DNA of 64,000 nt, taken from positions 370,196-434,195 of the forward strand of contig CDRNVI010000065.1 of assembly GCA_977017575.1 (NCBI GenBank). Reading direction: 5' to 3'. Under the pieces are notes generated by a model, which saw nothing but the letters and a program-made list of their open reading frames with translations, was not told where the DNA came from and made no database searches. This document shows, one piece after another, positions 19,487 to 57,698 of this stretch (its first letter is position 1; every line of letters begins with the position of its first letter). Both the position numbers and the translations under genes were made by a program. The stretch comes from Paramoeba atlantica (lineage: Eukaryota; Protista; Discosea).

Positions 19487-19566
19487 TGTATATTGTATAT
19501 GTCTGTGTGTGAGGGAGAGAGAGAGCGAGAGAATTTTCTACTTGCTATTCCTACCACATTAAAGAA

Positions 19567-19720
19567 ACAGTTTCTGTACCATAAAGAGTTTCTGGATCAT
19601 AAAAATACAGTTTCTGTACCTTGTTGGTACATTTTTCCTAGTTCATCCTTTCTTTTCCCGGAAACGGGCATACTCTTAAACTTTTATGTTCGTTTCCGGT
19701 TGGCGCTAGGGCCGGAAACT
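19567..19720 (+). ncRNA. Spliced-leader (SL) RNA-like gene, copy 1
   Basis: The kinetoplastid/diplonemid SL core ACAGTTTCTGTAC occurs at 19567 and 19607. The second core continues CTTGTTG|GTAC (donor GT at 19627). Downstream are a hairpin CCCG-GAAA-CGGG (19657-68), a U-rich single strand AACTTTTATG and a hairpin at 19692-19719. The exon 5' end is not canonical. Confidence 0.65.
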
Positions 19721-20063
19721 CATCTTTCCGTTGAAGAGGGGCCGCCGCTTCGCACCCTCGTGCAGCGCGCCAGACGCGCCGAGTGCCCCCGCTGGATGGA
19801 CGCCGGGGAAAGCCTCTCAACGACGCTGCGTAGCCGAAAGGTTTCTTGCAGCCTCTCAACAACGCCCCCCGCAGTGGAAGTCCAGTGCCCCCTTCACCCC
19901 CCCCCAGGCGCTGCAGGACCTCCCTTGAGGACCACGCGGCGTGGCCATAGGCCGAATCCCTGCCTACGACCGGCGTTGAATGCGCTGTAATGGCCGTTGA
20001 TAACGGTCGTCGTACGACAGGAAAAGCTCTGCCGGCTCGCCCGGTATGAAAGTGAAATGAAAT

Positions 20064-20166
20064 ACCTTGTTGTTGGTACTTAACCTTAGTTCCTTTCTTT
20101 CCCCGGAAACGGGCACTCTCTTACTGTATTTTCATACCCGTTGCCGACCGGCGCTAAAGCTGGAAC
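20064..20166 (+). pseudogene. Degenerate second SL RNA-like copy
   Basis: TACCTTGTTGTTG|GTAC (GT at 20076) followed by sequence aligning to copy 1, including CCCGGAAACGGGCA and GGCGCTA..GC.GGAA. The ACAGTTTCTG core is absent. Repeat period is ~450 bp. Confidence 0.5.
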
Positions 20167-38447: not shown

Positions 38448-41400
38448 TCAAGTACGAACATCTGACCAAGTTAACCCCAAAGCAGCATGAACTGGGAGAG
38501 GCACAGAGAGCTCAGTAGTACTTTGCATAACACTTTGTATACGATCTCTCCAATAGGCAGCTCGTTCAATCGGTACTTCTAATAAAAGTTCATCATGTAT
38601 CTGCAGAACGATCCATGGAATGTCACACACAATTGATGACGAGAGGGATCCGTTCACGTCTACTAGAACGGCTTCTTTTAATAAAAGGAAAACCTTTTGC
38701 ATCGCTAGCTTCATAATATCTGCCGCAGAGCCCTGACATACAGTATTGATAGCTGTTCTTTCTGCAGCTCTCTTCCTAGTTTCGTTACGTGAATTGATGT
38801 CAGCTAAGTACCTCCTCCTCCGGGAAAATGTCTCCACATAACCCGACTTGCGACATTGATTCAATATTTGCGTTTTGCATGATTCAATCGCAGGGTAGGA
38901 ATAGGTAAATTTATCAATCAAAGAATGTGCTTCCTCTACTGTGATTTCCAGTTCTTTGGCAAGTGACTTTTTTCCTCTACCATAAATTATGCCATAGCAC
39001 ACCGTCTTTACTTTGCGACGTTCTTCAAAGGTCACAGCATCCGGTGATGTGCAATGCATAATTTCGCATGCGAGCACTGAAAATATGTCTTCTTTTGCTA
39101 GAAGTTGATTTTTTAACTGAATATCGTCGCTGTAATGAGCGAGTACGCGAAGCTCCACGTGTGAGTAATCTACAGAAAGAAAAATAGAACCTTTAGATGC
39201 TAAAAAAGAGCGTCTCAAGTCGACCGTGACTTCTTTTTCATCGAAATTGAACAACTTCGCGTGAGGAATCGTTTGCAAATTAGGCTCCGACATGCTCAAC
39301 CGTCCGGTAACAGTTCCACTTTGAAGAAATTCTCCATGTAGTCTCCCATCAGCACTACATTTTCGAGGTAAAGGAATAATGTAATTCTGTAGCCAACCGG
39401 TAAGGACATTGTACTCCTTCAAGACGTGTAGCAATTTATCACCAGAGTACGAAGATTTCAGTTTCCTACGCCCACTTTGGTGCCGCTTTTCAACGGAAGT
39501 TACATGAATACTATTGCGGGATCGACATCTTACCGTGTTGTGCGACTGTTCTGATGGGCCGGGAACTGCGAGAAGACGTTCTACTCGTTTTTTCATTTGC
39601 CACGCAATCCAGTTGTAGTTGTCAGCACTGAACGCGATCCCTCTCCATTCCATTGCAGCCAATATTTCTACGAGCGGCATTTCAAAAGACTGAAACGCGT
39701 CGGTCAAATTTCGCAATTTCATAAGTCGCTGCATTCTTTTTCCAATGATGAGTGAAAGAAACGCAGTGCGACTGCCTCGCGAATGCGAAAAAGACATATC
39801 TCCGTGCTTAGCGTTGGACTGATTTCCAACACAATCGTACGGTTTATACGCAATGCGTGACAATGGCGTAGGAAAATAAGTCAGAATATTTTCCAGGGAA
39901 GGTTCTTCTGTCGTGTTCGACGGATGTATAAGTCCGCAGGCAACATGGATGTCGAATACATTACTAAACTCAGGGACCGTGTATGGGTTCAACTGAAAGA
40001 ACGAGTATAGCGATTTCAGCTGTTCCTTCCAGTGGAAGCAGAACTTTGCGCAAGTAGAATTTTGAAGCCAGCTTAACAAGTATTGCGCCACGATTTCTCG
40101 GTCGTTTGTGTCAACCAGGGCAACGAATGCATCGCCATCGGTTTTGGTTACCGAAAAAGAAAGCATATTCTCATAGTGGCAGTCATTTCGATGCAGGTTT
40201 AGGTGAATGCCAACTGCGTTTGCGGAATCTACTCTCTCCAATATTTCTGACAAAGCAGTGTAGCTAAACTTGAGCACATTGTTGATATGGTTTGATATGG
40301 AAATGTCTGATTCGCTTTCTAACCGGGGGTGCACACCTCCTGTGAACGCCTCATCATCGCTTCCAAAACTCAAGATTGCATCAGAATTGGACCCTTCTTT
40401 GTCTCCTGAGAAGGTACTACTGCTTTCGGAGTAGTCGTTTTCTTCTCTTTCTCTCGACAGAGATCTATTCCTGGTCCGCTTGGACGCACGCATAATGCTT
40501 TCTGAAGCTGCAACATCCCGCGATCGTAATGGACTAGAAACCCCTTCTGAAGCATTCTTTAAATCCAGTGCTTCCTGGTGCAGAATTCGACGTGCATCCT
40601 GAATTAACGTTGCGGCCTGGCGAGCTTCAGTTTTTCGCGCCGATTCAGTTGCATCGAAAGGAAGTACAGAGCGAAATATATTTTCTACGTCTTCCACTTC
40701 CGCAGTGGCGATCTCTTCCAGAGAACGATACCCTTTTTTGTATAATAAACGGGCCCTCCATGGTCTTAAAGATGGAATCTGGATCACGTTCAGCAGCTCG
40801 TTTTGAACCCCGAGTTTAAGTCTCTGCGTGACTTTATCGAACGCTGATGCAAAAAGCCACCAATTCAATTTCTCACAAAAAGTGCTTAGCATGGAGCAGT
40901 ACGTGCTTGCCGTTTCCATAAGTTTCTGTATCTCACCCCTTGATATTCCGTATTTTGAGGACAAAGCGGCTAATTCCATTTCGGAAACGACGTCCTGGAG
41001 AATGAGTGCCACGTAAAACCGGCGTAATGTGTGTATTTTCTGCTTTACGCCCTCTTCTAACGTTTTGTTTCCCGTTTCTTTCGGTAGGCCCACTCTCTCA
41101 ATGCGCAATAAAAGGGATTCGTCGACGCCCAGGGCAATGGCTGTTTTGCAATGGCTATGCGAGATGTGCTGATAAACATCAGTGTAGTACCGACCCCAGG
41201 GTGGATCCATTAGCTGCCCGCTGGGAACCACAAAATACAGGAGGTGAAGCTCGTCCGAGATAACGAAGTTTTCTCTAGCCCTTTCCAGCTCCTTAAAGGT
41301 GGTTATGGCCTGTTCAGGAGGTATCGAAGCTGCGACACATGCCGCTCCTAACAAGGAAGACTCAAACAGCTTCGGCGTGCGAAGCCACTGGATCACTTTC

Positions 41401-43472
41401 CACTGCTCTAGGAACCGTAGCGCGTGCTGTGCCTCTGCATGCACCTCCGCATATCCGCTCTGGTGACTGAAAAACGTTTTCGTAATAAACACCTGGATGT
41501 CATACACCGTGCGGACGAGACCTAGAGAGACGGCCTCCAGCAGCGCGCGCGTGAGCCCACAGCGCTCCGGGCGAAGTGCGGATTGGATTCGCGGAAGGGC
41601 GGCCTGTAGCAACCTTGCCACAATCCCTTTATCATTCTCCTTTCCCATTAAATAGGACTCCCCTACGGTATCCAGCCCAGCGCGTCCGGCACGACCACAG
41701 GCCTGGCGGTAGCAAATAATATCCAGCTGTTCCATCCCGACACGCAGAGAACGAAAAATCACACGTCGGGCCGGGAGATTCACCCCGGCAGCGAGAGTTG
41801 TGGTGCTGCAGAGTACTTTGACGAGCCCCGAGCGGTAGCCGTGTTCCAGAGCCTCCCGTTCCTCGAGGGTAAGTCCTGCGTGGTGATACCCTACCCCTTG
41901 GTGAAGAGCTTTCTCAAGCAATGGCTCAATACCCCCGGGAACATGTCGGAGTTTGGAAAATAATTCATTTGCGTGCAATTGCGTGGAAGAGGCACCAAAC
42001 TCTGTGCCGTGCGCGGAGATAAGGTCACTGAGATGAGTCGCTGTGGCCTCACAGAGTCGTTTTGTGGCACAAAAGACGAGAACTTGGTGTCCCTGCTTGA
42101 CGACCTCCGCGACAAGCGTTCCAAGACCATCGGTATCCTTGCGAGACAGCCCCAAAACGGATCGTACTGTGTTGAGCTCGGTGTCCAGGATGCTTTCTCC
42201 CACCTTGGCGTACTGTTTTAAAGGTACCGGTCGGAAATCGGTGGCAAAGTAATGTGTTTTTTCTCCAATCCAGTTCGCCAATTCCCACGCATTCGGCAGC
42301 GTTGCGCTCAAGACGAGAAGCTGAAGATCAATCTCTTTGGAGGCGTAAATAAGTTTGGTGAGGAGGAGTTCGAGAATATACCCCCGTGAGGTGTCTTCCA
42401 TCATATGCGCCTCATCAATGATCACCGTCGCAATTTGATCCAGTTTAGATTTGGAAATCAGATCGTTAACGTAGGCGTTTGCTTTCTCAATAGTGCACAC
42501 GACAATGTCACCAAAGGTTCGACGGATCGATCGTCTTCCAGCGTGACAACTGACCAAAAGGTCGGTTTGCTCGAGCAGAGAGGTGAAATACGAGGCCTTT
42601 TCTTCCACAACGGCGACGTAGGGAAGAACAAACAGCGCCTTCCTTCGCAGCTCGGTGACCCGTTTAATCATTACGATCTCTGCGACTAGGGTTTTACCTC
42701 CGCTCGTTGGGGCACTATAGACAAGATTTTCACCCTGCAATACTCCAGAACACTCCTCAAGGCAGGATTTCTGCCATGGATACAAACTCTTTATACCAAA
42801 TTTATTAAAATACGCACGAGCCACTGAAGTCGAAAGCCCATACCAGGTAAGGAAATTCAAATCAGGTTGACTCAGGATTGACTCCAAGGGTTTGATCTCT
42901 ATCTCAGATTTCAAATACGTTTTACGCCTTTGTACATTAGGACTTATTACGGGAGAATCTGATGACCGTATTTTCTCGTTGATTGTCTCGTCATTACCTA
43001 CAACGGATATCCTTTGTTCTACTTTCTCATCCGGTTGATCCGCCTCTGTTGCAGCTGGTGAAGGACTCGCTAATCCTCTCCTTAATAGATCAAAATTGAG
43101 AGAATCGGTAGAGATCAAATCGTCGCTTTCATAAAGAGGGTCGTCCAAGGTGTCGGCATCTACGAAAGGAGGCGAGCATTTACTTGCAAGGAAGTCTTCA
43201 CCGAAATCATGAGCTGGGGCATACAACTCTTCACTATCCTGGTTCCGGAATACTTGCTCATGCTGCTGGTTCTGTTGAGGAAACGAATCTACAGGCTCCG
43301 ATGTGGCGTTGAAGGCTCGGCAGAAGTGCTGTGTTCCTGGAATTTCACTATACGATACAAACGAGGCATTGCTTCTCTCTTCATCAAAAGCGTTGTTGTC
43401 GGACTCGGAGCTGGCGGAAAACAGATCATAGGCGTCTGCTTCAGGGGAGAGGTCTCGAACGCTACACATCAC
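38448..43472 (-). CDS. POLQ: DNA polymerase theta (Ski2-like helicase fused to family-A polymerase)
   Basis: Helicase motifs APTSGGKT, IDEAH, LSAT, TLAAGVNLPA and QACGRAGRAG. PolA motifs TGRLSMSEPNLQ, DYSHVELR, KTVCYGIIYG and QIHDELL. Confidence 0.95.
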   Translation of the reverse strand: MMCSVRDLSPEADAYDLFSASSESDNNAFDEERSNASFVSYSEIPGTQHFCRAFNATSEPVDSFPQQNQQHEQVFRNQDSEELYAPAHDFGEDFLASKCSPPFVDADTLDDPLYESDDLISTDSLNFDLLRRGLASPSPAATEADQPDEKVEQRISVVGNDETINEKIRSSDSPVISPNVQRRKTYLKSEIEIKPLESILSQPDLNFLTWYGLSTSVARAYFNKFGIKSLYPWQKSCLEECSGVLQGENLVYSAPTSGGKTLVAEIVMIKRVTELRRKALFVLPYVAVVEEKASYFTSLLEQTDLLVSCHAGRRSIRRTFGDIVVCTIEKANAYVNDLISKSKLDQIATVIIDEAHMMEDTSRGYILELLLTKLIYASKEIDLQLLVLSATLPNAWELANWIGEKTHYFATDFRPVPLKQYAKVGESILDTELNTVRSVLGLSRKDTDGLGTLVAEVVKQGHQVLVFCATKRLCEATATHLSDLISAHGTEFGASSTQLHANELFSKLRHVPGGIEPLLEKALHQGVGYHHAGLTLEEREALEHGYRSGLVKVLCSTTTLAAGVNLPARRVIFRSLRVGMEQLDIICYRQACGRAGRAGLDTVGESYLMGKENDKGIVARLLQAALPRIQSALRPERCGLTRALLEAVSLGLVRTVYDIQVFITKTFFSHQSGYAEVHAEAQHALRFLEQWKVIQWLRTPKLFESSLLGAACVAASIPPEQAITTFKELERARENFVISDELHLLYFVVPSGQLMDPPWGRYYTDVYQHISHSHCKTAIALGVDESLLLRIERVGLPKETGNKTLEEGVKQKIHTLRRFYVALILQDVVSEMELAALSSKYGISRGEIQKLMETASTYCSMLSTFCEKLNWWLFASAFDKVTQRLKLGVQNELLNVIQIPSLRPWRARLLYKKGYRSLEEIATAEVEDVENIFRSVLPFDATESARKTEARQAATLIQDARRILHQEALDLKNASEGVSSPLRSRDVAASESIMRASKRTRNRSLSREREENDYSESSSTFSGDKEGSNSDAILSFGSDDEAFTGGVHPRLESESDISISNHINNVLKFSYTALSEILERVDSANAVGIHLNLHRNDCHYENMLSFSVTKTDGDAFVALVDTNDREIVAQYLLSWLQNSTCAKFCFHWKEQLKSLYSFFQLNPYTVPEFSNVFDIHVACGLIHPSNTTEEPSLENILTYFPTPLSRIAYKPYDCVGNQSNAKHGDMSFSHSRGSRTAFLSLIIGKRMQRLMKLRNLTDAFQSFEMPLVEILAAMEWRGIAFSADNYNWIAWQMKKRVERLLAVPGPSEQSHNTVRCRSRNSIHVTSVEKRHQSGRRKLKSSYSGDKLLHVLKEYNVLTGWLQNYIIPLPRKCSADGRLHGEFLQSGTVTGRLSMSEPNLQTIPHAKLFNFDEKEVTVDLRRSFLASKGSIFLSVDYSHVELRVLAHYSDDIQLKNQLLAKEDIFSVLACEIMHCTSPDAVTFEERRKVKTVCYGIIYGRGKKSLAKELEITVEEAHSLIDKFTYSYPAIESCKTQILNQCRKSGYVETFSRRRRYLADINSRNETRKRAAERTAINTVCQGSAADIMKLAMQKVFLLLKEAVLVDVNGSLSSSIVCDIPWIVLQIHDELLLEVPIERAAYWRDRIQSVMQSTTELSVPLPVHAALGLTWSDVRT

Positions 43473-47317: not shown

Positions 47318-48976
47318 AAGCAACTTTCAGTGTGTGTAAAAATAAACGTTTGTGATGCAATTGACCGGTTAGTGTCAACGTCTTCAAATTTTAGACGTTT
47401 AGAAACTTTAGGCGTTTAGAAAAAGAGATAAAGCTTTTGTTTTCCTCCGTCTCTGATTAATTATCCTACCAGAACATCAGTGGCTGGCATAAACTTCGCC
47501 AAGAAAAAGGTGACCAAGGCTTAATAGCCATGACAGGAACTAATGCCAGACCATCGCTTAAAAAGCACTTCGAAAAATTTATCAAAGAAAGTATTTCTGA
47601 ATGTCACTTTTTTGGAATTCCAGTCAGCAAGGCGTATCTGTGGAGAATAGCTTGTGAATCCCTACTTACTCCCGATGACTCTCCCCGTTTAGCGCCCGTG
47701 ATTGAAGTGCTTAAAAAGGTTCAAGGCGAAAGACAAGAAATGCGGACGCCGTCTTAACCCACATTTGTTAGATGGTTGAGACAATTTAATGTAATTATGA
47801 AATCTATCAAACGGACACATAAACCTTCACTTCCTTTGGATCGGGAGGATCAGGGTCGCAACATGCTCCTGCGAATCGTTTATCATGTTTCATATGCCCA
47901 ACATGGAACTTTAAACGAAGATCTTGTTATTAATATAGACGAGACAGGAATTGCGTATAATAAGCTGGCCGAGCGGGGAGCTTCCTACAAAGGGAATAAG
48001 GCCGGTAATATTTCCCTAGCTGACAAACGAAGCTGCACATTGCTTGCTGGCTTATCTCTCTCAAGAAAACTTCTTTCTCCCTTCGTTGTTTGGAACGGGA
48101 AAGAGACATGCAAACATGCCAAAGTCAGGCATTACTATGAAACGGTGCAATATCAGACGGAAAATCATTATATTTCCACCGGAGCACTCTTAAACTATGT
48201 ATCAAGTATTTTAAAACCCTACTATGATGGTCAAACGCAGCATATTCTACAAGATGACCGCAAGCCTGCGATGGTTCTCCTTCTGGATTGCTGTTCGGTT
48301 CATGTATCCAAAGCCACGAGGAATAGATTTATCGATCACTGCCGTCCGGGAAAATTGTTTTCATGGCTGTGCGTGGTTTATGTCCCCGCCAAATGCACTT
48401 CTCGTCTTCAGCCATGCGACGTCGGTTTGTTTAACCGTCTAAAATCAAAAGCATTGCACTTCAGAACAATTTGTTTGCTAAAATACTGTCAAGATTTGTA
48501 TGCTCGGTCACAAAGAATCGGTGATACCAGCTCTACTGGGACAAAAATTAGCAAAAGCCAACTTCTCGACAGCACTCAAAGCGGCTACGATAATCTCAAT
48601 AGTTCTCAACAAAAACATGCCAACATACAATCTTGGACAAAGGTTGGTACTATCCCCCCCCCCTATCCTAGCGTTGCCTGGTTTTGGGAAAAAGCAACGC
48701 TAGGAGGGGGGGTCAAAAAAAAAATCGCCGCTTCGCGGCAAGAGAGTCTTGAAGAGACAGTCTAAGAAGCAACGCTAGGATAGGGGGGGTACTGAGGCAA
48801 CGCTAGGATAGGGGGAGAGTATCTCACGAGAAACTTTGACAAAGCCTGAGCATATATTGGAAGCTACAAGACGCTCTATCGAGTTCTCCGGTGAAAACAC
48901 TGCTGTAGATTCTGACGAAGAAATGGATCTTGAAGAAATTTCTCCAGAAAGTGCAGATCAACCTTTTGTACCTTAG
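47318..48976 (+). pseudogene. Decayed pogo-like (DDE_1/CENP-B-type) transposase
   Basis: Aligns with 49726-51783 from KQLSVCVKINVCD onward. Lesions: a 17-bp tandem duplication (47390-47423) causing a frameshift, in-frame TAA at 47458 and 47755, and a MITE at 48650-48819. Catalytic IDET / LDCCSVH / LQPCD are retained. A TIR-like TA|CACCCCCTCTCATTAATTTTAATAAAT lies at 46722-46748. Confidence 0.85.
48650..48819. mobile_element. MITE family A, 170-bp internally deleted copy, inserted into the pogo ORF
   Basis: Same TIRs as 2623-3015, with TA at 48648-49 and 48820-21. Confidence 0.9.
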
Positions 48977-49174
48977 CCCTCCCTTTATTATGGTTCAGGT
49001 TCATTATACTGTATGGGCGCTTAAGCAAATATTTGTCATGATCACCTCATAATTATTATCCTCGTTTACCCACAATCTATCCTTACAGCGAAAAAAATTG
49101 GTTCATCCTATCAGCTAAAGTGTTGTATATCACGTCCTTCCACCTACCCTCTCTCATTAATTTTTATAAATATA

Positions 49175-49290
49175 CTGTACCCCCCCTACTTAATTGTCAC
49201 CGCTTTTTGGGAAAAAGGACAATTAAATAGGGGGGGTGCAAATTTTTAAGAAAGTAGGGGAAAAAAAAATTGCGCCGCTTCGCGGCGCAT
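49175..49290. mobile_element. Left end of a family-D-like MITE (no right end found)
   Basis: TA|CTGTACCCCCCCTACTTAATTGTCACC...GACAATTAAATAGGGGGGG aligns with 30673-30735 and includes the GCCGCTTCGCGGC hairpin. Confidence 0.6.
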
Positions 49291-49725
49291 GTTTTACTCT
49301 ATTCTACCACCTGCTATTATTTTTCTTATGTAAGCGTATGTCCAACGGAGACACTAAAAAATTCACGATGGGCACCACTAGAGGATTTTATAGAGGCCCT
49401 ACCCGAGGGGCAGGAGGCCGTATTCTCACCCAACGCCCTAGAGGACCAGTAACCCGTTGTTCATTTGAGGTAGTTGACAGTAAACGTACTGTCAACGAAG
49501 TGGCATCGTTTGGGTTGACTCGTCAACAAGTTTTTGAGGCATTATCTTCTAAAAAGCAATTTTTAAGAATACTTTCTTTGACGTTCTGTTGTGCCGTATT
49601 ACTGTAAGTTGCATTAATAATTATAAATTTGCACAAATCCTAAATTTATAATTATTAAGGGTTTATAATTCTTTCAGAGTGTTTTTATAATTATAAATTG
49701 GTTTTAAGCTTTTTGTTTTACTCGC

Positions 49726-51783
49726 ATGTCACGACCGAAGGGGAAAAGGGGACAAGATCAGAACGTAGGCAGCATTGAACAATTTACTAGCGTATCCGGC
49801 CGACCCCCTCCTCGATGGATGGAGAAAAAGCGGCGTTTTCTTACATCCTGCTTAGAAAATGGAGGGGAAAATTCTTTTTTTAAGGAACTTTTTGTAAATA
49901 TGTTCCAATCATTTGCGAGTGAGCATGAATCTCTTTTTCTCAGTTACGTCGAAACTTTATTGCTTGAAGAGCGTACCAAGTTCATTATTGAGGAGCGCAA
50001 GGAGCGTGAAATGATAGCATGTAAATTTCATGGAGGTTTATTTAGTCTTAACGGCGACGGCATACCAATATTCTGGGACGATAATTCTACGTCGCTTCAA
50101 TTTTCGTTTTCTTTTTGTTGGACGGCGCGAAGCGTTGATGCGCCGCGTTCAATGAGTGATGAAAGTAGTGATGCTCCTCTCGCTGAAGACGATGATTCTG
50201 AACATGTGGAAATGTCACATTGCGTAAAGAAGCAATTCGTCTCCAACGTGAAGATTTGTCTGTGTGATTCCATGGATTATTTCATGCATCAATCAGACTA
50301 CTTCGTACGTCTCCCAAAGAGGGGAGGACGGTTTCCTCATTACACTAACCTATGCAAAAAACTGAAATCTGTATATCCGAGCATTGCTGAACAAATCGAA
50401 TATCAAATTCTTCGTCTTTGGTGGCAAAAACGCGAGAAGCTCGGAGACGAGTCCTTAATTCCTAAGAATACATCTAACCAACGACCAAGCATGTTGTCAT
50501 TCTATGAACCCCTCATTCGCAGGCTATTGAATGAGCTAATATTTTACGGAATTCCTGTAGGTAAGAACCTGCTCTGGGCAATTACACGTGAAGCAATCAT
50601 GCACGATTCTGACGACATTGATTATCTAACGAAACATCTCGTAGACAAAGTTAGATCTGGTGCCAAGGTAAAAGATGAAGAAACGTTTATACCATCCTAT
50701 CATACCTTCATCCGGTGGCTGTCGAAAATGGATATTTCAATGAAATCGACAAGAAATACACCCGAAGGCGCTCTACCAACAAATTTAAACGACCTTGCGC
50801 GAGATATGCTACTGCGTATATGTTATTATGTAGGCATAGAATGGAACGACAAGGTTATTTCCCCTCTTCTAATTAACATGGACGAAACTGCCGTCGCCTA
50901 TAATTCTCTTGCGGAGCGTGGCTTAACATATCAGGGGCAAGAAGCGCATAGCATTGCAGTAGGAGACAAACGAAGCGCAACTCTTGTAACTGCTGCATCT
51001 TTAAGCGGTGATTTGGTTCCACCATTCGTGATCTGGAATGGAAAAGAAGCCTATAAGGGTGCGCACGTGAAGACGTATGACACGACGGTTCAGTACCAAA
51101 CTGAAAGTCACTACATTAGCACAGGGGCATTCAAAGAATTTTTGTCACGCATTCTTCAGCCATATCATGAAAATATTGTTGGAAAACTGGATTTATCGAC
51201 TCACACGCCTATGATTCTGCTTATTGATTGTTGCAGTGTTCATACATCAAGCGCTACCAAAGAACAGATTATTTCCCAATGTAATTCGAACGGAGCATTT
51301 CCGTGGCTCCGAATTGTATTTGTTCCTGCGCGATGCACGAGTGTGCTTCAACCATGCGATGTGGGGATCTTTAATCGATTGAAACCTAAAATACGGTACG
51401 AACGAACGTTGGTTCTTCTGTCGTATTGTAAGTATAAGAGACAAAATTCTGAATTGATTGGAAGCGCGAAGGAGCTGAGTTCTCGTTTAAGTAAGGAACA
51501 ACTTCTCCGTTCGATTCATAAAGCATATGAATACATGAGCTCCCCAGAGCAGCGCAAAGCAAATGAGAAAGCATGGGAAAAAGTAGGTATCACTAGTTGC
51601 ACGTTGGAGGATCGTCGCAACTTGGTTGAAGCATGGGGAAATCGAAGACGCTTATTTCCCTTGAGCGACGACTACCACCCATTAAGTAGTGACGAAAATA
51701 CGGATTCCGAGGATGATTTCGAGGATATTCCCATTGAACTTGATGACCAACAATGGCTTGGTGTTGACACAAATGTCAATTAA
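49726..51783 (+). CDS. Pogo-like transposase, intact (685 aa, DD43D)
   Basis: CENP-B/Tc5-like HTH (GIPVGKNLLW...PSYHTFIRWL), INMDET, LIDCCSVH and VPARCTSVLQPCDVGIFNRLK. 43 residues counted between the 2nd and 3rd Asp. Acidic C-terminal tail. Confidence 0.92.
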   Translation: MSRPKGKRGQDQNVGSIEQFTSVSGRPPPRWMEKKRRFLTSCLENGGENSFFKELFVNMFQSFASEHESLFLSYVETLLLEERTKFIIEERKEREMIACKFHGGLFSLNGDGIPIFWDDNSTSLQFSFSFCWTARSVDAPRSMSDESSDAPLAEDDDSEHVEMSHCVKKQFVSNVKICLCDSMDYFMHQSDYFVRLPKRGGRFPHYTNLCKKLKSVYPSIAEQIEYQILRLWWQKREKLGDESLIPKNTSNQRPSMLSFYEPLIRRLLNELIFYGIPVGKNLLWAITREAIMHDSDDIDYLTKHLVDKVRSGAKVKDEETFIPSYHTFIRWLSKMDISMKSTRNTPEGALPTNLNDLARDMLLRICYYVGIEWNDKVISPLLINMDETAVAYNSLAERGLTYQGQEAHSIAVGDKRSATLVTAASLSGDLVPPFVIWNGKEAYKGAHVKTYDTTVQYQTESHYISTGAFKEFLSRILQPYHENIVGKLDLSTHTPMILLIDCCSVHTSSATKEQIISQCNSNGAFPWLRIVFVPARCTSVLQPCDVGIFNRLKPKIRYERTLVLLSYCKYKRQNSELIGSAKELSSRLSKEQLLRSIHKAYEYMSSPEQRKANEKAWEKVGITSCTLEDRRNLVEAWGNRRRLFPLSDDYHPLSSDENTDSEDDFEDIPIELDDQQWLGVDTNVN

Positions 51784-51900
51784 TTTTTTTTATTTCTGTC
51801 CGTTGGACAGAACTCAAAATCGGGAAGCTAGGTCGGGACCTCCTTGTTGTCTTACCTGGTACTACCGCCTCACTGATGGCACTAACGCGGACATGTAGTA

Positions 51901-52085
51901 ACCCTCCCCCTCGCTTATATATACACTTACGGTTATATATACACTTACGGTTATATATACACTTACACTTATATATACACATAAACACTTATATATACAC
52001 ATATTAGCTACTTTCGCTTATATATACACTTACACTTATAACTTTTACATACAGATAATTATGTGTATATAACCAGGGGGGGTTA
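51901..52085. repeat. MITE-like insert with TTATATATACAC(TTAC) tandem repeats in the pogo 3' region
   Basis: About six TTATATATACAC units, weak terminal inversion (CCCTCCCCCTCGCTTATATATACAC / GTGTATATAACCAGGGGGGTTAG), and flanking ACATGTAGTA direct repeats. Confidence 0.55.
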
Positions 52086-52340
52086 GTACATGTAGTAGTA
52101 CATGTAGTATCATTCGTAAAAAAGCAAGAGGCCCAGTTGCATAATTATTTATAATTATAATTATAATTATAAATACAAAAGTTTTATTTTTTATATTTAT
52201 AATTATTAATGCAACTCCCAGTACAGCGTCGAAATGTCTAATATCGAAATAGGAAAGTCTAATAATCAAAGCCTGTCAAGTGAGAAACGATTACCTCTTA
52301 GTAGACGTAGATTACCTCTAGTAGACGTAGAGTGTATGCT

Positions 52341-53180
52341 TTACATTTGCTTCAAAAGGGTCTCATGAAAATTAAATTCGTTCAGAGATGTAGGAAATAA
52401 TGCCTTATTAAACTCTCCTACAAGTTCCTTGTTTTGTTCAACACTTAGCCGTTGCAACTGCGGTGGCAGTGATTCCAGCCCTGTTATGTGCTCAAGTTGA
52501 TTGTTATTTAATCTGAGCACTTTCATGGAAGGAGGAAGTTGGCGTAGATCAACGCGACCGGTAAATGCATTCTGATTCAGTATGAGATCCGTCATTGAGT
52601 GTGGTAACGCGCAAATATTAAGGGAACCAAAGAGCTCGTTATGAGAAACTGAAAGCTCTGTGAGATTGTGAGGCAGAATGCTCAAATCAAGCGTGCTGCA
52701 AAATGAATTTGACCATAAATACGCCTCAAGTGTAGCACCAGGAAGATTTTCTACATCTAAGGAGCCAACAAGCTTGTTTGAACCTAAGTATAGAAATTCT
52801 AATTCGCGTGGAAGAAGTTCGAGTGGTAATTCGCCGGTCAAAAGATTCTTAAATATGTTTAGATAACATACCGATCGGGGCATGTATTTCCAATTTGCAG
52901 TTCCTTGAAGTTCACGCCGGTGCCATTCAATATTTGTTACTTCCTCTGGTCTAGTCGAATCTTTGCACTGAACTCCAGACCACTTGCAAGCAGGAGTTGA
53001 TGAGTTCCAAGATGGATGCGCATTTGTCAATCCAGCTGTAAATTGAGACAGTTCGATTTCCGGAGGAAAAATACTTCCAAATACTTTTCCTCGACGACTA
53101 CTGTAGCTGGGGGGACACTGTGCCTCTGTTTGATGCAAATGACTTGCAAAATGACTTGCTTCCGCTGAATTGTCTGACAT
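52341..53180 (-). CDS. Leucine-rich repeat protein (paralog of 37267-38163)
   Basis: WNSSTPACKWSGVQC cap and 22-aa LRRs. Confidence 0.9.
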   Translation of the reverse strand: MSDNSAEASHFASHLHQTEAQCPPSYSSRRGKVFGSIFPPEIELSQFTAGLTNAHPSWNSSTPACKWSGVQCKDSTRPEEVTNIEWHRRELQGTANWKYMPRSVCYLNIFKNLLTGELPLELLPRELEFLYLGSNKLVGSLDVENLPGATLEAYLWSNSFCSTLDLSILPHNLTELSVSHNELFGSLNICALPHSMTDLILNQNAFTGRVDLRQLPPSMKVLRLNNNQLEHITGLESLPPQLQRLSVEQNKELVGEFNKALFPTSLNEFNFHETLLKQM

Positions 53181-56423: not shown

Positions 56424-57698
56424 CTAGAGGCCAGGCTCGAAATACAAACAATCCGAATCAAGCATTTGTAAAAGGTCGCGTAGTCTTTCATGGGGAACGT
56501 TTTCACACCGCAATGCTTCATTAAACTCCTTCAAGGTTGAATAAAACATTTTCAGTCGAGAGCAAAACGCAGCACGATTCCCTTCTTGCTTCCTCTGCCT
56601 CGATTCGACATGTTTACTCGAACGTAAAAAACGCACCCATTGCCCAGCCATGGACTCGCGAATCTTTTTGTGGAACCTTTCATCCCAATACGACAAACCC
56701 ATGGCTCGTGCCTCACGAATACAAATATAGGGCTGGTTATCAAAATCGACCTGGAGCGTTCGAGGCCCTGCGAGCTCGATTTGGACAAACTCAAACGGCA
56801 GCATACACCCAAAGGAGAACCGCTGCGGCTGCTCGGTGTGTTGGCATGCCAACCATTTTGTATGACCCATCCATTGTATGTTTTTCGGTAGAAGATTATC
56901 TACCATTCTTCCGTCTGTCTTTTGCTTCTGTTCTGGACATTTGCGTCCCCTGGTCTCCCCAAAGGTGTAGCAGGAACCAAATGAAAATCGAATCCTCTCG
57001 CAGGAGTAAATCGGAAATCCAGTTTGTCGCAGCTCCTGGTAAAACGTAATCTCAATATCAGAGAGAAGTGTATTGGGTTTTGTGGCATAAATTAGGATTT
57101 GGGTTTCGACCTCCCGACAGGATGAACTGCTCCAAAAAGGGACCGGGTTGGGCGTGAGCGTACAGCCCAGGGATTGGCCTTCTTGATCCGTGCTTGTGGC
57201 AAACAGGGCTTGTTTGAAAACGTTATTTGCGGCTTGGCCTGGAAAATTCGATTCATAAAGAGTCCGTAACCTATGAAACAGTTCTCTATATGAGCCCATT
57301 GAAGGTTGAAAATGTACCAGACTTTTTTCAGCGCGACAAAAAGAGGACACGAAAGGGTCATTTTCGGCAAGAACAGGACATGACGGAAGGGAAAGCAAAT
57401 TTTGCTGCCCTTGCGTACAGAGACACTTTGCAAGACATATTCGGTCTGTGTGTGTTTGTTGAGAGGACGAGAGAACAGCATGGCCCGGGGTTTCATAAAT
57501 CAAGGAGTTCCTTCCTATCGTATCACAGAAAGTAAAAGATGTTCGAAGTTTACTCGATACATCGCGTAACCACGGGTGTGGAGACTTCTCAAGAAAGGTT
57601 CTCCATTTTTTACACACAAAAAGACAACGTTCGATTTCTTCTGCATGTAAAAATGCTAGGCATTGTGCTATCCCGTCCAGTGGAAAATCTATGGACAT
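56424..57698 (-). CDS. F-box protein (At4g00755-like C-terminal domain)
   Basis: N-terminal F-box (FPLDGIAQCLAFL..EEIERCLFVCKKW). ATSTD, FWSS, PIYSCERIRF and YICI match the recalled family pattern. Confidence 0.75.
   Translation of the reverse strand: MSIDFPLDGIAQCLAFLHAEEIERCLFVCKKWRTFLEKSPHPWLRDVSSKLRTSFTFCDTIGRNSLIYETPGHAVLSSSQQTHTDRICLAKCLCTQGQQNLLSLPSCPVLAENDPFVSSFCRAEKSLVHFQPSMGSYRELFHRLRTLYESNFPGQAANNVFKQALFATSTDQEGQSLGCTLTPNPVPFWSSSSCREVETQILIYATKPNTLLSDIEITFYQELRQTGFPIYSCERIRFSFGSCYTFGETRGRKCPEQKQKTDGRMVDNLLPKNIQWMGHTKWLACQHTEQPQRFSFGCMLPFEFVQIELAGPRTLQVDFDNQPYICIREARAMGLSYWDERFHKKIRESMAGQWVRFLRSSKHVESRQRKQEGNRAAFCSRLKMFYSTLKEFNEALRCENVPHERLRDLLQMLDSDCLYFEPGL

Follow-up and report, generated by a model that had tools for sequence, protein, structure and literature searches.

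Does a stretch of 64,000 nucleotides from the Paramoeba atlantica assembly GCA_977017575.1 (contig CDRNVI010000065.1, positions 370,196 to 434,195 of the forward strand; this whole stretch is called the window, and positions are counted from its first letter) carry a DNA transposon that is complete and still able to move? An earlier note, made from the letters alone, had described positions 49602-52221 as a complete, potentially active pogo-like element with an unusually long DD43D spacing, i.e. with 43 residues between the second (D2) and the third (D3) aspartate of its catalytic triad. Very likely, these positions contain an autonomous transposon of the cut-and-paste type that belongs to the pogo superfamily (IS630-Tc1-mariner group) and resides in a kinetoplastid-type nuclear genome, where it was mobile until very recently and probably still is. 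Recent mobility is well supported, by an empty site, a second nearly identical copy, and a series of deletion derivatives; activity at the present day is probable as far as can be judged from sequence.

The element forms a unit of 2,620 bp. Its arms, which measure 29 nt each with the flanking TA (49600-49628 and 52195-52223), are 93% complementary, and the terminal inverted repeats (TIRs) themselves are 27 bp long with two mismatches at positions 4-5, where the left end reads CTGTA and the right end CTGGG. A complete element with 27-bp TIRs and a TA duplication, as the earlier note had it, is therefore confirmed. A 22-nt core of the TIR occurs in the window solely at both ends of the element (0 expected), and it is found 22 times in the 45.7-Mb genome as compared with 0 for a reversed control. 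TA borders both ends of every complete copy, as well as each single end that was recovered. The 14-mer TTATAATTATAAAT has 13 matches in the window, all of them within 49613-49698 and 52147-52210 (0.05 expected), and these subterminal repeats are plausible candidates for additional transposase-binding sites. Between the ends lies the uninterrupted open reading frame (ORF) of 685 residues that had been reported, with a match to Pfam DDE_1. A tRNA scan of the element found none. The features of the element, and of an older relative to its left, are as follows.

49600-49601, no strand: left TA target-site duplication; the empty allele on contig C7 has a single TA at the same point
49602-49628, plus strand: left 27-bp TIR; its tip, CTGTAAGTTGC, is kept in all copies
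49613-49698, no strand: left subterminal repeats of TTATAATTATAAAT, about 3 sites, from the motif count in the window
49726-51783, plus strand: transposase gene, 685 residues, uninterrupted, from the ORF list, Pfam, and the structure model
49726-50235, plus strand: family-specific N-terminal extension, residues 1-170, from the alignment and the predicted structure
50233-50760, plus strand: predicted DNA-binding region, residues 170-345, two helical bundles with a predicted local distance difference test (pLDDT) score of about 80-95
50758-51645, plus strand: RNase H-fold catalytic domain, residues about 345-640, from Pfam DDE_1 and fold matches
50881-50883, plus strand: codon of the first catalytic Asp, D386, from the alignment
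51226-51228, plus strand: codon of the second catalytic Asp, D501, from the alignment
51268-51306, plus strand: loop with about 6 extra residues relative to DD37D relatives, residues about 515-527, from the alignment and a pLDDT of about 97
51358-51360, plus strand: codon of the third catalytic Asp, D545, from the alignment
51914-52000, no strand: tandem repeat with an 18-bp unit (4.7 copies), located in the 3' untranslated part; the copy on contig C1 carries another transposon at the corresponding point
52147-52210, no strand: right subterminal repeats of the 14-mer, from the motif count in the window
52195-52221, minus strand: right 27-bp TIR; its tip, CTGGGAGTTGC, is kept in all copies
52222-52223, no strand: right TA target-site duplication, matching the single TA of the empty C7 site
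47318-48765, plus strand: old decayed paralog of the same clade, 42% amino-acid identity, a frameshift and two stops, DD43D, present on contigs C65 and C7

On either side of the element, contig C7 and the window are collinear, with C7 on the opposite strand. Window 39000-40000 corresponds to C7:17850-18850 and window 56500-57500 to C7:2967-3967, with bit scores of the 1-kb probes within 1% of the self-match, and the insertion point is equally far from the probes in the window and in C7, to within 2 bp. At this point C7 runs from GCCGTATTA directly into CAGCGTCG with a single TA and no footprint, and the window runs from GCCGTATTA into the element and then into TACAGCGTCG. Since C7 provides a precise empty site, the insertion postdates the separation of two near-identical haplotypes, or a very recent segmental duplication. 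A second full copy was found on contig C1 (27075-32311), with unrelated flanks, both of which consist of other repeats, and with a TA duplication of its own; it is 99.4% identical to the window copy over 2,338 bp. Six coding positions differ between the two copies: three of the differences change an amino acid, two are silent, and one is a TAA>TCA stop loss on C1. In addition, at least five TA-flanked deletion derivatives occupy distinct sites (539 bp on C83, 976 bp on C45, 1,574 bp on C33, 1,723 bp on C19, and 5,663 bp on C22), all of which keep the asymmetric tips (left CTGTA, right CTGGG), and an older copy with 89% identity is located on C51/C60. The search for near-identical copies and an empty site, which had been proposed together with the original description, thus yielded both, and the possibility of a single fixed copy, named there as the opposite case, is excluded by the empty C7 site and the copies elsewhere. 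From the empty allelic site, the second copy, and the TA-flanked derivatives, the element described as potentially active is very likely still mobile.

The copy on C1 has further peculiarities. Within its 18-bp repeat region there is a 2,648-bp insertion (C1:29410-32057; L031:3411-6058) with imperfect inverted ends, CAGGGGTGCGAA at one side and GCGAACCCTG at the other, and with an opposite-strand ORF of 211 residues that matches Pfam DDE_3 at 38 bits; judging by these traits, it is a nested Tc1/mariner-type element. C1:8210-28577 (loci L032-L034 and L031) is a tandem array of four units with a period of 5,093 bp and 99.8-99.9% identity. Each unit is composed of 3,587 bp of upstream flank and the first 1,506 bp of the element (transposase residues 1-461), and the last unit continues into the full copy. 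The array stems either from a segmental duplication in tandem that happened recently and has one of its breakpoints within the transposase gene, or from the assembly. The public predicted proteins P0001 (470 residues) and P0151 (514 residues) match its truncated frame over residues 47-461 and have the E82D of the C1 type. As for the 3' untranslated part of the element, a piece of about 82 bp (window 51811-51892; element positions 2210-2291) is matched at about 80% on at least 15 other contigs, outside any copy of the DD43D element, and might represent a short dispersed repeat, captured or shared by the element.

To which family does the transposase belong, and is its spacing exceptional? Pfam DDE_1 (PF03184) is the best family and the sole one above threshold; residues 419-602 score 36 bits, with the cut-off at 22, and DDE_3 is sub-threshold with 21.8 bits. 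A full HMMER scan returned 630 related proteins at E<=1e-3, of which 13 reach E<=1e-30, and 116 relatives from the scan were included in a MAFFT alignment. The triad is formed by D386 (NMDET), D501 (LLIDCC), and D545 (QPCDVG), with 114 and 43 residues between them, and the three columns are Asp in 116, 115, and 116 of the 116 aligned rows. The proposed D-D-D triad therefore holds, and its third residue is Asp, not Glu. The count of 43 residues was also correct for both the element and the decayed paralog, which is 42% identical over residues 203-621 and broken by a frameshift and two TAA stops; both are DD43D in the alignment. It was the description of this spacing as unusually long that could not be maintained, since pogo superfamily spacings range from DD29D to DD59D and include a DD42D Lemi element (Gao et al. 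2020, PMC7386202). Nor was a usual value of 30-35 the proper yardstick, as the closest relatives outside the clade are DD37D and the extension between D2 and D3 consequently amounts to only about 6 residues. The conserved insertion in the catalytic domain is real in that these residues form one ordered loop (about 515-527) between a helix (509-514) and strand beta5 (528-533).

An AlphaFold model of the transposase, built from a 125-row alignment, has a mean pLDDT of 74, which rises above 95 over residues 350-640. In this model D501 closes a strand (496-501) and D545 starts a helix (543-573). The top structures in VIA-align are SETMAR (Z 13.7, root-mean-square deviation (rmsd) 3.5 A over 185 residues) and Mos1 (Z 13.6), with Sleeping Beauty also among the best, and retroviral integrases score lower (Z about 11); Foldseek matches Mos1 to the model at E 1e-6. 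A sequence search of the PDB gave no match at E<=10, and in a word-index protein search the sole match was a fragment with 100% identity.

A tree was computed without the variable D2-D3 loop. It groups the element, the window paralog, P0002, P0003, and P0006 with a support of 97 in the Shimodaira-Hasegawa-like approximate likelihood ratio test, all of these being DD42-44D; P0004 (DD43D) and P0016 (DD38D) branch next to the group, and P0069 and P0132 attained a spacing of 43 independently. The signature DCCSVH...QP[CM]D with 42-45 residues was found in about 15 distinct sequences. The tree and the signature thus agree with the suggestion of a distinct clade with long spacing, and by the sequences compared, DD42-45D marks a small, distinct clade that is associated with kinetoplastids. 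Its named members come from transcriptomes of the free-living prokinetoplastids Apiculatamorpha spiralis and Papus ankaliazontas, both of whose cultures hold bodonid prey too, so that the transcripts may stem from either kinetoplastid; the remaining members outside this genome come from metagenomes. Outside the clade there are 'DDE-1 domain' proteins of basidiomycetes, one ascomycete, and Volvox, with spacings of 37 (79 rows), 35 (11 rows), and 38 (7 rows). At least 12 diverged paralogs with 30-52% amino-acid identity are dispersed in the genome itself, mostly broken, and their sites include C67:38900-40903, C100:35523-36886, C39:107020-108405, and C72:10017-10859. One paralog on C67 has 45 residues between D2 and D3.

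The N-terminal half of the transposase gave a mixed result. The long N-terminus that had been pointed out is real, with an extension of about 170 residues, and is common to the full-length relatives P0156 (691 residues) and P0170 (720 residues), to P0023, and to diverged broken paralogs in the genome; on this comparison it is a conserved family trait. In residues 1-170, a long helix is predicted at 50-101, and the motif G-[ILM]-P-[IV]-F-W-D at 111-118 is conserved; an acidic linker of low confidence is also present, and neither Pfam nor the PDB gave a match to these residues. The helix-turn-helix (HTH) that the earlier note had listed is not recognisable by sequence, as Pfam searches of residues 1-159 and 160-345 at E<=10 returned no DNA-binding family. 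There are only predicted helical bundles at 206-243 and 256-334 (pLDDT about 80-95) and a loose alignment with full-length Mos1, which begins at about residue 175 (rmsd about 12 A). A separate model of residues 1-345 (pLDDT 66) produced coiled-coil-like and weak matches only (Z<=6, Foldseek E>0.6). Residues about 170-345 sit where the bipartite DNA-binding domain of this transposase group lies, and their position in the model suggests that they may bind DNA.

The transposition of the element can be potentially described as follows. The transposase would bind the 27-bp ends and the subterminal 14-mers via its helical region (residues about 170-345), and the RNase H-fold domain with D386, D501, and D545 would cut and rejoin the DNA. 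Insertion would take place at TA, which becomes duplicated. The 43-residue spacing arises from an ordered loop that is about 6 residues longer before strand beta5, a trait common to the members of the small clade. The transposase gene is antisense to its neighbours, and its expression would need the addition of a spliced leader.

The surroundings of the element bear on this last point. The long intronless host ORFs of the window are all on the minus strand and include DNA polymerase theta (1,674 residues), a Pex16-like protein, an F-box protein, and leucine-rich repeat (LRR) proteins. A spliced-leader-like 23-mer, ACAGTTTCTGTACCTTGTTG, which is followed by GTA and has partial repeats beside it, is located in window 19560-20110; together with the GTA, it looks like the 3' portion of the spliced leader of kinetoplastids. 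There are 234 occurrences of it genome-wide, dispersed across many contigs, and this dispersal far exceeds that of a simple tandem array of spliced-leader RNA genes. With Rfam, no family reached the gathering threshold in the window, and the surroundings of the spliced-leader-like locus gave no meaningful match either. Overall, the host genome looks kinetoplastid-type from its sequence. The element lies 120 bp past the stop of an LRR gene on the minus strand (52341-53180). It is antisense to the gene cluster and is part of an intergenic stretch of 6.5 kb packed with other repeats. Just left of the insertion, window 48950-49475 holds two other dispersed repeat families, for which dozens of contigs match positions 1-225 and 224-526 of a left-flank probe at 76-93%; therefore, the intergenic stretch from 45.9 to 52.3 kb is a nest of mobile elements. 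The gene of DNA polymerase theta (window 38448-43472, minus strand), which is intronless and combines a helicase with a family-A polymerase, is single-copy and present on C65 and C7.

How firmly, then, can an autonomous and probably active pogo element be proposed? Besides the lack of an HTH match in Pfam and a fold search of the N-terminal half that gave weak matches only, several observations weigh against it. C7 could be a recent segmental duplicate and not the other allele, although the insertion would still postdate the duplication. There are only two coding copies, of which the one on C1 has an open frame but has lost its stop and thereby gained 16 extra residues, and its 3' part is interrupted by the nested element. 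Finally, the element is in antisense orientation to the surrounding gene cluster. This orientation would also suit an element that moved recently and looks intact, the present copies of which no longer transpose due to host silencing, antisense non-expression, or a disabling substitution. The small number of coding copies, as compared with several deletion derivatives and many dead paralogs, points in the same direction, and the three amino-acid and two silent differences between the copies give no selection signal either way. Such an inactive element is nevertheless unlikely, given the open frame of 685 residues with its intact triad and conserved ends, an insertion that postdates the divergence of two near-identical haplotypes, and relatives that are transcribed in two prokinetoplastid cultures. 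A domesticated host gene derived from pogo, like the vertebrate TIGD and CENP-B genes, might likewise have a long open frame and an extra N-terminal region, and pogo transposases are often domesticated (PMC7386202). The intact TIRs and TA duplication, the absence of the locus from the collinear C7, the second copy in different flanks, and the non-coding derivatives with the same ends make this explanation exceedingly improbable, and it was rejected. An assembly artefact or contamination was rejected as well, since host DNA surrounds the element on several contigs.

It is also conceivable that the element belongs to another or a new superfamily of the IS630-Tc1-mariner group and is pogo-like through the shared fold only. 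The DDE_1 score of 36 bits is modest, DDE_3 also scores 21.8 bits, though below its threshold, several members of the clade fall below the DDE_1 cut-off, no pogo-type HTH family was detected, and the tree comprised relatives without named pogo references. Against this, DDE_1 ranks first and no other family passes its threshold, the catalytic residues form a D-D-D triad, and those of the 630 HMMER relatives that were examined or named are all 'DDE-1 domain' proteins. The neighbours in a protein atlas are DDE_1 and HTH_Tnp_Tc5 clusters, and the published Lemi and Mover pogo elements are likewise without a DNA-binding domain detectable by Pfam (PMC7386202). A different superfamily is therefore very improbable. 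The element is thus best regarded as a new, probably active member of the known pogo superfamily.

For a long time, retroelements were considered the only mobile elements of kinetoplastids, the group of the trypanosomes and related free-living forms, and few DNA transposons have been reported in them. With a filled and an empty site, a second near-identical coding copy, and mobilised deletion derivatives, the element offers a candidate active cut-and-paste transposon of kinetoplastids that can be tested directly. Its less ordinary aspect is that a demonstrably young coding cut-and-paste element resides in a kinetoplastid-type host, and the DD43D spacing widens the known diversity of pogo only slightly. 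It also raises the question of how a transposase that is antisense to a polycistronic cluster is expressed when trans-splicing is required. One tentative possibility, to which we give somewhat less than even weight, is that the DD42-45D clade is a kinetoplastid-restricted pogo lineage that transposes today, with the N-terminal module and the longer catalytic loop as adaptations to the host. If this is true, it would be the first DNA transposon of Kinetoplastea with direct evidence of current mobility. The module of about 170 residues, with its long helix and G-x-P-x-F-W-D motif, and the loop could then serve multimerisation, regulation, or a function related to the polycistronic genome, and the element could become a native transposon tool for kinetoplastids.

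Among known systems, the Lemi family spans DD29-42D; one of its elements, in Salpingoeca, is DD42D, and another, from Aspergillus, is DD37D, has a CTGTA tip, and lacks a Pfam DNA-binding domain (PMC7386202). The present element resembles Lemi in its TA duplication, short TIRs (about 23-26 bp in Lemi), DDE_1 domain, and D-D-D triad. Variable spacings including DD37D and DD42D, and some members without a Pfam-detectable DNA-binding domain, are further likenesses; the CTGTA tip of one Lemi member equals the left tip found here, and the hosts of Lemi include fungi, algae, and protists, as do those of the DD37D relatives found here. It differs in its spacing of 43 (42-45 in the clade), which is one past the published 42 when compared by description, in its length of 685 residues with an N-terminal extension of about 170 as against about 400-600 residues in Lemi, and in its kinetoplastid-type host; the tables of Gao et al. 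2020 contain no kinetoplastid or euglenozoan (PMC7386202). Given the published superfamily range and the extent of Lemi to DD42D, DD43D is therefore a clade marker just past the Lemi range and no outlier within pogo. Mover elements, which are known from red algae, stramenopiles, and Rhizaria, share DDE_1, the D-D-D triad, the TA duplication, and the lack of a DNA-binding domain in hmmscan, but they are uniformly DD36D with CACCC/CACCG tips (PMC7386202), as compared with DD43D and CTGTA/CTGGG here.

Classical pogo, Tigger, and Fot1 elements are also cut-and-paste transposons with TA targets, DDE_1, and a D-D-D triad; however, they have CENP-B_N, HTH_Tnp_Tc5, BrkDBD, or HTH_psq domains, none of which was detected in the present element, and a spacing of about 29-36 instead of 43. 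The transposases Mos1, SETMAR, and Sleeping Beauty, whose structures are solved, have the same catalytic fold, with Z scores of 12.5-13.7 and an rmsd of 3.2-4.5 A over 185-198 residues, whereas their sequence identity is 10-14%, they belong to another superfamily (DD34D/E), and they are without the long N-terminal extension. The first DNA transposon to be reported from kinetoplastids was Merlin, in Bodo saltans and Perkinsela, in the form of relics that showed no evidence of activity (Lopes et al. 2021, PMC8101967). It resembles the present element as a kinetoplastid DNA transposon whose copies are antisense to neighbouring genes (PMC8101967). It differs in that it belongs to the IS1595-like superfamily and was described as conserved with no evidence of activity, in contrast to the empty site and the near-identical copies of the element described here.

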